From: Botryllus schlosseri
Lineage: Eukaryota
DNA: 64,000 bases
NCBI GenBank assembly: GCA_051294905.1
Contig: CM119376.1
Location: forward strand, 18,972,001 to 19,036,000
Direction of reading: 5' to 3'
Part shown: positions 29,901 through 32,900 of the stretch, piece by piece
Layout: each line of letters begins with the position of its first letter
How positions within the stretch are numbered: position 1 is the first letter of the stretch
Notes under the pieces: generated by a model
The model's database searches: none
Told to the model about the DNA's origin: nothing
What the model saw: the letters and a program-made list of their open reading frames with translations, nothing else
Translations under genes and position numbers: made by a program

Positions 29901-32900
29901 TAACGCACCTGTTCTTTGGTTTGAGCCTTTTGAACGAAATCGCGTCCCACTTTGATTTTGGGCTTTAGCAAAGCTTTGGTGAACGAGACAACGTCAATAC
30001 CGAGCAAGGCGCAAAGCCTTTGAGCTACAGTATTGTCTGGCATGCAAGCCTGGTCAGAGCTGCGTTCCTTTTTGAAATCCATGTTGCCAAACTGCATCAC
30101 CGCACTGATCACCTTCAACATACCTGACAAATACAATTTAAATTAGCTCTACAGCGAATGAATAACCGTTTTCAACATACTTTTGACATCGCTTGGCGCG
30201 ATGTTCATGATTTCCATTGCGTTCAACGTTTCCTGGAATTCATCGCTATCCTTGTGTCCCGGAACGCTGAGGCTTCCGTTGCTTATGAAACGATACTTGG
30301 AAATGTCTTCAAGCAGAAGGTCCTCTGCAATGAAATTTTGGTAACCACTTCCGAAACCACGACGGCGTGATATTTTAGATCTTACTTTGCAATTCTTTGT
30401 TGGCACCGGTGATGAGCTGATAGAAAATGTGGAATGTTCTTTCATTGGAAGCTTGCTGAATAACACGGGCCTTCTCAAGCAAATCTTTCGATTTCAAACA
30501 GCGCAAGTTAAGGAGATTTCAATGTTCCGGTGAGATATAACAGCCCCGATGTTTACTAATCGGTATAGCACTTCATATGTAAACAACGAGATCTACAGAT
30601 TAATTATTATGCACAAGTTTGGTTAACGCGTGTCAATTTCAATACCAGAGGCACATTGGCTAGTTAAGGGACTCATAAAATGGAGATGTGTGTCTTCCTA
30701 CAAGGCATCCATCCACCCTAAGTCAGGAAGGAAATGACTACTGAATTATTCACACATCTATCAATACACCGAGTTTAAAGACCTAATGCATACCATGATG
30801 CCAGAAATGGCTGCTAACAATTTTCTATATCACTTACGGAAATAAACACGCGCAAAAAACACGAAGAAATAGTGTTTAAAGGATACAAGTTTCGATGTTG
30901 GCCCCGGCGATATATCCAGATGCATCAAAGTTAATTCTGATGAATTTACCCTGCATGAAAAATACGAAATGTTAATTCGAACCAACATTGCAGCAGTAGG
31001 CCTATACAACTTACAAAACGTGAAGAGTTGTCATTTTTGACAGTCTTGGCATTACCAAAGGCTTCCAGGATGGGGTTGGCTTGCAGCAATTGTTGCTCAA
31101 GCTCACCCTGTACAATAATAACAAGATTAGCAATTGGAAAAATATGTCAACTCAGTTGTAAGCTATGTAACTACAAGTTTTACTGGCGCCTAATATTCTC
31201 AGCAGTAACATGACAGTGTTGTGTTTAAACATGTTCCAAGTCATTTGTCAGAGAAGGAGGAGCTAGATAGATCCTTAATCAACCAATCCATCAAATCACG
31301 GATAGAGTTGGTTTCAAGGTCACGGGCACTGCATCACTCATCAATCATAACCAAAACTTCTCCGATCAAAGGGAATTAAATTAAATGAAACAAGTTCCAA
31401 AGTAATTCTCAAATACTGCAAATGAATTCTGTGTCTTACAAGGCAATTTAGATATACTGTGCAAGTATGTTGGCAGCAACGTAATTTTCCAATCATTTTC
31501 ACACTATTTAATCGCGAGATAACAAACAACGTAACCAACAATAAATTGTCCCAGGAAAATCATACATTTCAATTTCACTGCATAATAAAAACTTGCTATT
31601 ACAAAGGCTTCATGCAACATTGATACACATGCACATAGGAATGAATTGTGTCAAGGCTTACCTAAACCAGTCGATAGCATGCAATGTATAACGGTATTAG
31701 TTTCTCAGTGGTTTGAATGAATAAAACAGAGGAAGCAAGATACTGTTCTGAAACTTTACACAAATCTTAAATATTATTATGTTGGATAACATATATTTTG
31801 CCCACTCGACACGCGAAAAAGAACCACACACGTATTGAAAATGTTTATATAAGGTTGTACAGATACACGTTTCTGCCTATGACACATGTGTAGGTGTAGA
31901 GGCACATGCCAAAGGAACATTAATAATGATACCAGTACAACATTACATCCAGCTGAACATAAACCTTGTACCACATGCAAAGAGTAGACACATTACTCCA
32001 CAGATACACAATCCACAATCCGTGGTCCCCAAAGAAACGCATGCTGCACAAAAAGTCAAATCATTTGCCCAGAGTTTGAAAGATTTCAGAGATGTAGAAG
32101 CGATCTTAGGCATATAGGATTTATTTGACGACTGCATTTCTTTGTTACTGTTTGATAGCAGCAGGACATTCAATCATTATTCTTTCGGGAATTTTCTTAT
32201 ATTGACTTTGGCGATAGTGCTGCTTGTTAATTCTCATAGTGACAGTTTTATGATCAAGCTTCGTGAAGGGAACAGAGGCTCCCTCAAATAATGCTATGGT
32301 CGGTCGACTTGATCCAATAAATCCTAGTTCCTAAGATCGCATGTGTCAGCACTTGAGCCGGTCAAGTATGCTTGATAGGAAAGTCGTGCTATTAAAGGCC
32401 AAGAGAAAAATGAGAGAGTGGCGCAGCAGCATTCTTTCCATTTGCGCAGAGAAATGTTGCTATTGCTGTATTGTACTCTACTTACGTAGGATAGATTCTG
32501 TCGGTACACAAATCACATAAAAATATACATACGATACGATTAGGCAGGGTACTTATAGGCTTTCAGCGAGGGGACACACTGTGATCCCGGCCGTCGTGGT
32601 GTACATAGCAGCCAAGATTTGGCGCAGACAATTGTGAAATGGAGACAGATGAACACTACAACACTACAAGTCTGATTTTAGAATATGGCCCACATGGATG
32701 TCTGCGGAAAGACAACACAACACAGGCTACAGAACAAGTAAATGAAGATAGACAAGACAAGACACAGACTAATAGATACAATACGCGATGGAAGTTTTGT
32801 CAAGATCTTTAACGCCGCATACCACATTCACGTCACGTCTGTGCAAGTAGGTGAGATGTTCCAAACCACAATCAACTAGGAAACGACAGAACAGGCTGTG

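Follow-up and report, generated by a model that had tools for sequence, protein, structure and literature searches.

Does the non-muscle myosin II heavy-chain gene of the tunicate Botryllus schlosseri carry, in the intron that interrupts loop 1, a distal splicing enhancer of the kind that acts on vertebrate MYH10? Loop 1 tunes the release of nucleotide by myosin II, and a textbook example of a distal Rbfox enhancer is the one that governs the neuron-specific B1 insert of vertebrate MYH10. Should the same layout of exon plus enhancer exist in a tunicate, the switch would be older than the vertebrate gene duplications. The question is posed by a patch of UGCAUG hexamers in the window, by which we mean the whole 64,000-nt stretch of B. 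schlosseri DNA analysed here, and it was framed by a preliminary description that read the patch as an Rbfox-responsive element downstream of candidate loop-1 exons.

The myosin II gene and its loop-1 intron

Six-frame translation, together with tblastn using a full-length myosin II (P0058), places the non-muscle myosin II heavy-chain gene on the minus strand, from a Met at 39002 to approximately position 14700. The loop-1 intron (31108-34979, minus strand) measures 3872 nt and is the longest mapped in this gene, most of the others being 57-125 nt long. It opens with a GGAACG^gtgagc donor and closes with a ttgtacag^GGTGAG acceptor (carets mark exon boundaries), and both flanking exons meet it in phase 0. 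The upstream constitutive exon (34980-35085, minus strand) encodes the P-loop (GESGAGKT) along with the first part of loop 1; the downstream constitutive exon (31015-31107, minus strand) is the one that encodes GELEQQ. Because the intron lies between the P-loop exon and the GELEQQ exon, its identification as the counterpart of the vertebrate MYH10 E5-N30-E6 intron is supported.

Two other features of the gene were recorded along the way. An exon of only 28 nt (37042-37069, minus strand), encoding (D)REDQSILC(T) and lying between introns that measure 1.4 and 2.0 kb, was absent from the tblastn matches and was recovered by its peptide pattern. Further downstream, the exon for the start of the relay helix is present in two 87-nt copies (29413-29499 and 28882-28968, minus strand), 445 nt apart within a single 1.7-kb intron interval; judged by their sequence and arrangement, they look like a mutually exclusive pair in a non-muscle myosin II. 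The second copy is followed, about 115 nt downstream, by a sense-strand GCATG at 28763-28767, and a TGCATG is found near the pair at 28291-28296.

Candidate cassette exons and their conservation

The most informative comparison came from L001, a contig of 1710 nt from a different sequencing run, which encodes the sole match (P0151) to a 198-aa open frame within the loop-1 intron. The P0151 protein itself (L001 953-1543) is a gene-calling artefact in which three TGA codons were read as Trp, laid over a real exon. When L001 is compared with the loop-1 intron only two blocks align, in the same order and at similar spacing.

The first of these, block A (33653-33811, minus strand; 79% identity over 162 nt), is a conserved non-coding block surrounding a candidate microexon of 18 nt (33705-33722, minus strand) that encodes QPEFKQ and ends in a GC donor, CAG^gcaagt. 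The exon would shrink to 15 nt if the second AG of its gcagcag acceptor were used. The microexon and its junctions, tactcgcagcag^CCAGAATTCAA(A/G)CAG^gcaagt, are the same in the window and in L001 except for one synonymous change, AAA>AAG, the unusual GC donor being kept along with the acceptor. Conservation of block A reaches about 100 nt upstream of the microexon and about 45 nt downstream, and takes in a UGC some 33 nt ahead of the acceptor.

Block B is an in-frame, cassette-type exon of 282 nt, or 94 aa (32934-33215, minus strand), with a ccgaaaag^GAT acceptor and a TCT^gtgagt donor, in phase 0. Its equivalent in L001 is 285 nt long; the ...aaag^G acceptor and the ^GTGAGTAC donor are conserved, again both in phase 0. 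The two versions differ in the manner of coding sequence, with pN of 0.16 against pS of 0.80 and 21, 14 and 48 differences at the first, second and third codon positions, respectively. Both candidate exons are multiples of three, free of stops and situated between the P-loop and GELEQQ exons. Coding constraint is thus apparent in each, in the larger one from the pN/pS values and the excess of third-position changes, in the microexon from the fact that its sole change is synonymous. Since synonymous sites are saturated and the remainder of the intron cannot be aligned, both blocks are under selection.

The splice sites of these exons were scored with a position-weight model derived from 31 introns of the same myosin II gene. 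The microexon scored 3.1 at its acceptor and 4.9 at its GC donor, and the 282-nt exon 3.6 and 2.5, respectively; all four values fall below the 10th percentile of the constitutive sites of the gene (4.9 for acceptors and 5.0 for donors). Exons with weak splice sites typically need enhancers. Weak sites combined with conserved flanks give the two segments the appearance of regulated cassette exons, and we infer their alternative use from splice-site weakness and from vertebrate precedent, although they may instead be constitutive or go unused in this species. Whatever the role of the hexamers discussed below, the presence of two conserved cassette exons of this type would mean that the loop-1 intron carries regulated coding information.

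One could also envision the 282-nt segment as an alternative first exon, giving rise to a P-loop-less myosin from an ATG at 33290 in the frame spanning 32934-33290. This possibility is contradicted by L001, which has an in-frame TGA two codons before block B and no counterpart of the ATG at 33290, and in which similarity starts at the AG acceptor. The first-exon reading therefore fails and the cassette reading, which places 94 residues in loop 1, stands. These 94 residues matched no Pfam family and nothing convincing in the ESM Atlas, and length-limited searches of protein databases found no protein in which the segment is joined to myosin.

Further relatives were sought by several routes. In a representative library the N-terminal exon had a single close relative (P0001, 95%, on a 1.4-kb contig), and exact look-up of the window's N-terminal ORF returned no record. 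A search with the frame of the GELEQQ exon gave 726 matches, none recognisable as a close relative; the best of them (L002) comes from a distant animal, has a dissimilar intron and, over the 1.1 kb preceding its exon, lacks TGCATG. Neither the 98-aa exon, used on its own as a database query, nor the metagenomes, scanned both for a protein pattern and for the conserved DNA of the microexon, yielded a match.

An inverted repeat of 20 nt, 90% complementary (32632-32651 and 33583-33602), brackets the 94-residue exon. In the RNA this pair could loop out that exon and draw the microexon nearer to the GCAUG patch. Contig L001 yielded no such pair.

The GCAUG cluster and its possible roles

A pattern search of the minus strand finds TGCATG at 31611-31616, 31628-31633, 31678-31683 and 31974-31979. 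As the myosin II gene lies on the minus strand, like the TGCATG copies, the hexamers read as UGCAUG on the sense strand. Two further sense-strand pentamers, in the contexts GGCAUG (31905-31909) and AGCAUG (32040-32044), bring the cluster to six GCAUG at 31611-32044. Three of the hexamers are packed into 73 nt and all four into 369 nt, and the six pentamers into 434 nt. The preliminary description had spoken of four hexamers on the sense strand of the gene within about 370 nt, three of them within 75 nt, and had placed them 1-2 kb downstream of the candidate exons. Both statements hold: by coordinates the distance is 1.0-2.1 kb, the hexamers (31611-31979) lying 955-1323 nt downstream of the donor of the 282-nt exon and 1726-2094 nt downstream of that of the microexon. 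The cluster is nearer to the constitutive acceptor at 31107, from which it is 504-937 nt upstream, than to either cassette exon. Every sense-strand GCATG of the intron falls within 31611-32044; the remaining 2.9 kb, in which both candidate exons reside, has none. Inside the cluster TGCATG occurs four times on the sense strand and never on the antisense strand.

The patch is also GU-rich. Its 451 nt contain TGTGT six times, ATGTG six times, CATGTG four times and GCATGTG three times. It does not appear to be a repeat or a transposon, as judged by the lack of a second copy in the window, of a tandem repeat and of an extended inverted repeat. No Rfam match was obtained at E <= 1 that would point to a structured RNA gene, and none of the open frames across the cluster gave the Pfam match that might betray coding sequence. 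Weak inverted repeats (75-78%) connect the cluster with the 5' end of the intron, but realignment failed to lengthen them and they were taken as chance. The densest GCATG cluster of the window, counting both strands, is elsewhere, in a region of telomere-like CCTAAC/CCCTAA repeats at 50553-50830 set between inverted copies of a TCAGCATG(C/T)GAC unit. The neighbouring gene probably harbours here, in one of its introns, a small element resembling a transposon, with no relation to Rbfox.

How far the cluster exceeds chance depends on what is counted. TGCATG is not enriched in the window (43 copies seen, 40.9 expected), nor is it enriched in the loop-1 intron, where dinucleotide-preserving shuffles predict 2.4 copies against the four seen (P of four or more, 0.22) and 5.0 copies of GCATG against six. 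The unusual property of the GCAUG copies in this intron is their clustering, not their abundance. Of 5000 shuffles of the intron, 0.38% had four TGCATG within 369 nt and 0.08% had six GCATG within 434 nt; in shuffles of the whole window, 14 of 1000 showed four same-strand TGCATG within 369 nt somewhere. Because shuffles ignore the texture of real sequence, the real intron was used as its own control. It contains 98 hexamers with exactly four copies, and TGCATG alone has all four within 369 nt; likewise, among the 164 pentamers with six to eight copies, only GCATG places six within 434 nt. The earlier figure of about 0.1 hexamers expected is too low, for it assumed uniform base composition; the dinucleotide content of the 451-nt patch itself predicts 0.47 TGCATG, or about 0.5, and 0.86 GCATG. 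Sense-strand (U)GCAUG above local composition, a mark of Rbfox-dependent intronic enhancers, is what the patch contains. Part of the clustering signal may be local texture, since the patch is GU-rich and holds GCAUGUG three times, and the signal counts only because motif and intron had been specified beforehand by the MYH10 precedent.

We propose an Rbfox-type role for the 434-nt patch at 31611-32044, that of a distal intronic splicing enhancer, and give this reading about an even chance. The points in its favor are that the motifs are confined to the sense strand, that such clustering is rare, that two conserved exons with weak splice sites lie upstream and that MYH10 offers a precedent; taken together they make an Rbfox-type function of the cluster plausible. 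Weighing the other way are the shorter distance of the patch from the constitutive acceptor than from either cassette exon, the motif total of the intron, which is at expectation, and an arthropod orthologue devoid of such a cluster. Where Rbfox is expressed, it would occupy the six (U)GCAUG sites of the pre-mRNA in their single-stranded form and, from this downstream position, would aid recognition of the weak sites of the microexon, of the 282-nt exon or of both. Inclusion of either exon would lengthen loop 1 beside the nucleotide pocket, and a longer loop would be expected to alter the ADP-release and ATPase kinetics of the motor. That Rbfox binds, that the patch acts as an enhancer, that the exons are used alternatively and by tissue, and that the kinetics change are all steps that we infer.

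The main competitor of this proposal is chance. The cluster might be without function, the few GCAUG of a long intron happening to fall in a GU-rich stretch of it, and the cassettes might be controlled otherwise, for example through their conserved flanks. We regard this as a real possibility, if not the probable one. Its strength lies in the motif counts, which for the intron as a whole are at expectation (4 against 2.4 and 6 against 5.0), and in the behavior of other words: in the real window 6.2% of equally abundant hexamers form a cluster of four within 369 nt somewhere, and six different hexamers do so within the loop-1 intron alone. The cluster was, moreover, picked after the sequence had been read, and the strongly conserved non-coding sequence found so far adjoins the microexon and not the cluster. 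A fortuitous origin fits less well, however, with the finding that TGCATG and GCATG are each the sole clustered k-mer of their own abundance class in this intron, with the strand asymmetry of the cluster, and with the agreement of both motif and intron with a precedent established by experiment in MYH10.

Alternatively, the patch could be a different cis-element, either an intronic transcriptional enhancer built on E-boxes or a platform for other RNA-binding proteins of the CELF type, which favor GU-rich sequence. GCAUG would then be a by-product of a GCAUGUG-like unit. This view draws on the four CATGTG/CACATG E-boxes within 352 nt, the six UGUGU and the three GCATGTG in the 451-nt patch, and on the fact that CATGTG is itself one of the clustered hexamers. 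But three of the four CATGTG are mere tails of GCATGTG, and a palindrome-like DNA site does not require the four-to-zero strand bias of TGCATG; we consider such an element improbable. Still less credence can be given to the idea that these are Rbfox sites serving another splicing decision, whether to repress or time the acceptor at 31107, which lies within 1 kb of the cluster, or to control an unrecognised and possibly stop-containing exon in the patch itself: by eye, an acceptor ttgactttttgtgcag and a donor CATGTG^gtacaa do flank 72 nt (about 31973-32044) with an in-frame stop inside, but a position-weight scan of the loop-1 intron yielded no in-frame cassette candidate, and repression of the downstream exon is unlikely because it encodes an indispensable part of the motor.

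Evolutionary depth and known systems compared

How old might a distal Rbfox enhancer in this intron be? L001 stops about 350 nt beyond the large exon, short of the cluster region, and its 1710 nt contain no GCAUG. In an arthropod orthologue (L003, GCA_009176505.1), TGCATG is missing from the loop-1 gap of about 3.5 kb, and GCATG is present there just twice, at scattered positions. The absence of the cluster from this arthropod intron leaves an enhancer conserved across bilaterians unsupported. The preliminary description had seen in the tunicate gene the same layout as in MYH10 and had taken it as possibly deeply conserved. The layout is borne out as far as intron, strand, distance and the two conserved in-frame exons with weak splice sites are concerned; deep conservation beyond chordates finds no support, the one arthropod orthologue compared lacking such a cluster. 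By tblastn spacing, the exon blocks of L003 are likewise furthest apart at loop 1 (5623-9147, about 3.5 kb), and this interval may hide unannotated alternative exons.

It is worth considering a narrower scenario, in which tunicate non-muscle myosin II keeps an ancestral chordate arrangement of a loop-1 microexon and a distal downstream Rbfox enhancer. We advance it tentatively and, with all its consequences, consider it doubtful. Under this scenario myosin II kinetics would already have been controlled by Rbfox before the vertebrate genome duplications, and B1 of MYH10, C1 of MYH14 and the loop-1 insert of MYH11 would all go back to that one arrangement. Tunicates would have added a second cassette, of 94 residues, under the same enhancer.

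A full-text search of the literature turned up no paper that deals with tunicate myosin II in terms of its loop-1 splicing or its control by Rbfox. The type of element is well known, and the tunicate case would be a new example of it with some evolutionary interest. If the proposal is true, an intron of 3.9 kb in an animal with electroporatable embryos would provide a compact and tractable model for distal Rbfox activation of very small exons.

Cassettes at this site are familiar from other animals. MYH11, the smooth muscle gene, also has a loop-1 cassette, in Drosophila the zipper gene carries an alternative exon at the same loop-1 junction, and vertebrate loop-1 inserts are about 10 residues long. 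The 94-residue insert, whose coding character is shared by a diverged relative and which matches no known domain, is far larger than these, and we know of no vertebrate counterpart. The best documented cassettes for comparison are those of MYH10 (B1) and MYH14 (C1) (PMC3535348). Like them, the tunicate exons would insert residues at the 25/50-kDa junction, by the nucleotide pocket, and the microexon is in-frame and adds few residues; unlike them, its QPEFKQ is without evident similarity to the vertebrate inserts.

As to the regulatory side, metazoans share conserved Fox-1 proteins as well as the (U)GCAUG motif that these target (PMC2777236). The tunicate cluster resembles distal Rbfox sites in general in that the motif is strand-specific and lies downstream, a position that predicts activation (PMC2777236). 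It differs from them in how it came to be recognised, as the known cases were defined by cross-species conservation or CLIP, and this one by motif clustering.

The closest parallel is with the human IDDE, an element of 201 nt with two UGCAUG, located 1.5 kb downstream of the 30-nt exon N30 and required for the neuron-specific inclusion of that exon via Rbfox1/2/3 with PSF (PMC3082911). The tunicate patch has six GCAUG, four of them UGCAUG, against the two of the 201-nt human element, and two candidate cassettes (18 nt and 282 nt), known from sequence alone, take the place of the single 30-nt exon. Several features correspond: the gene family is the same and so is the intron, between a P-loop exon and a GELE(R/Q)QLLQ exon, and in both a patch of a few hundred nucleotides carries UGCAUG on the sense strand 1-2 kb downstream of a very small loop-1 exon of cassette type.
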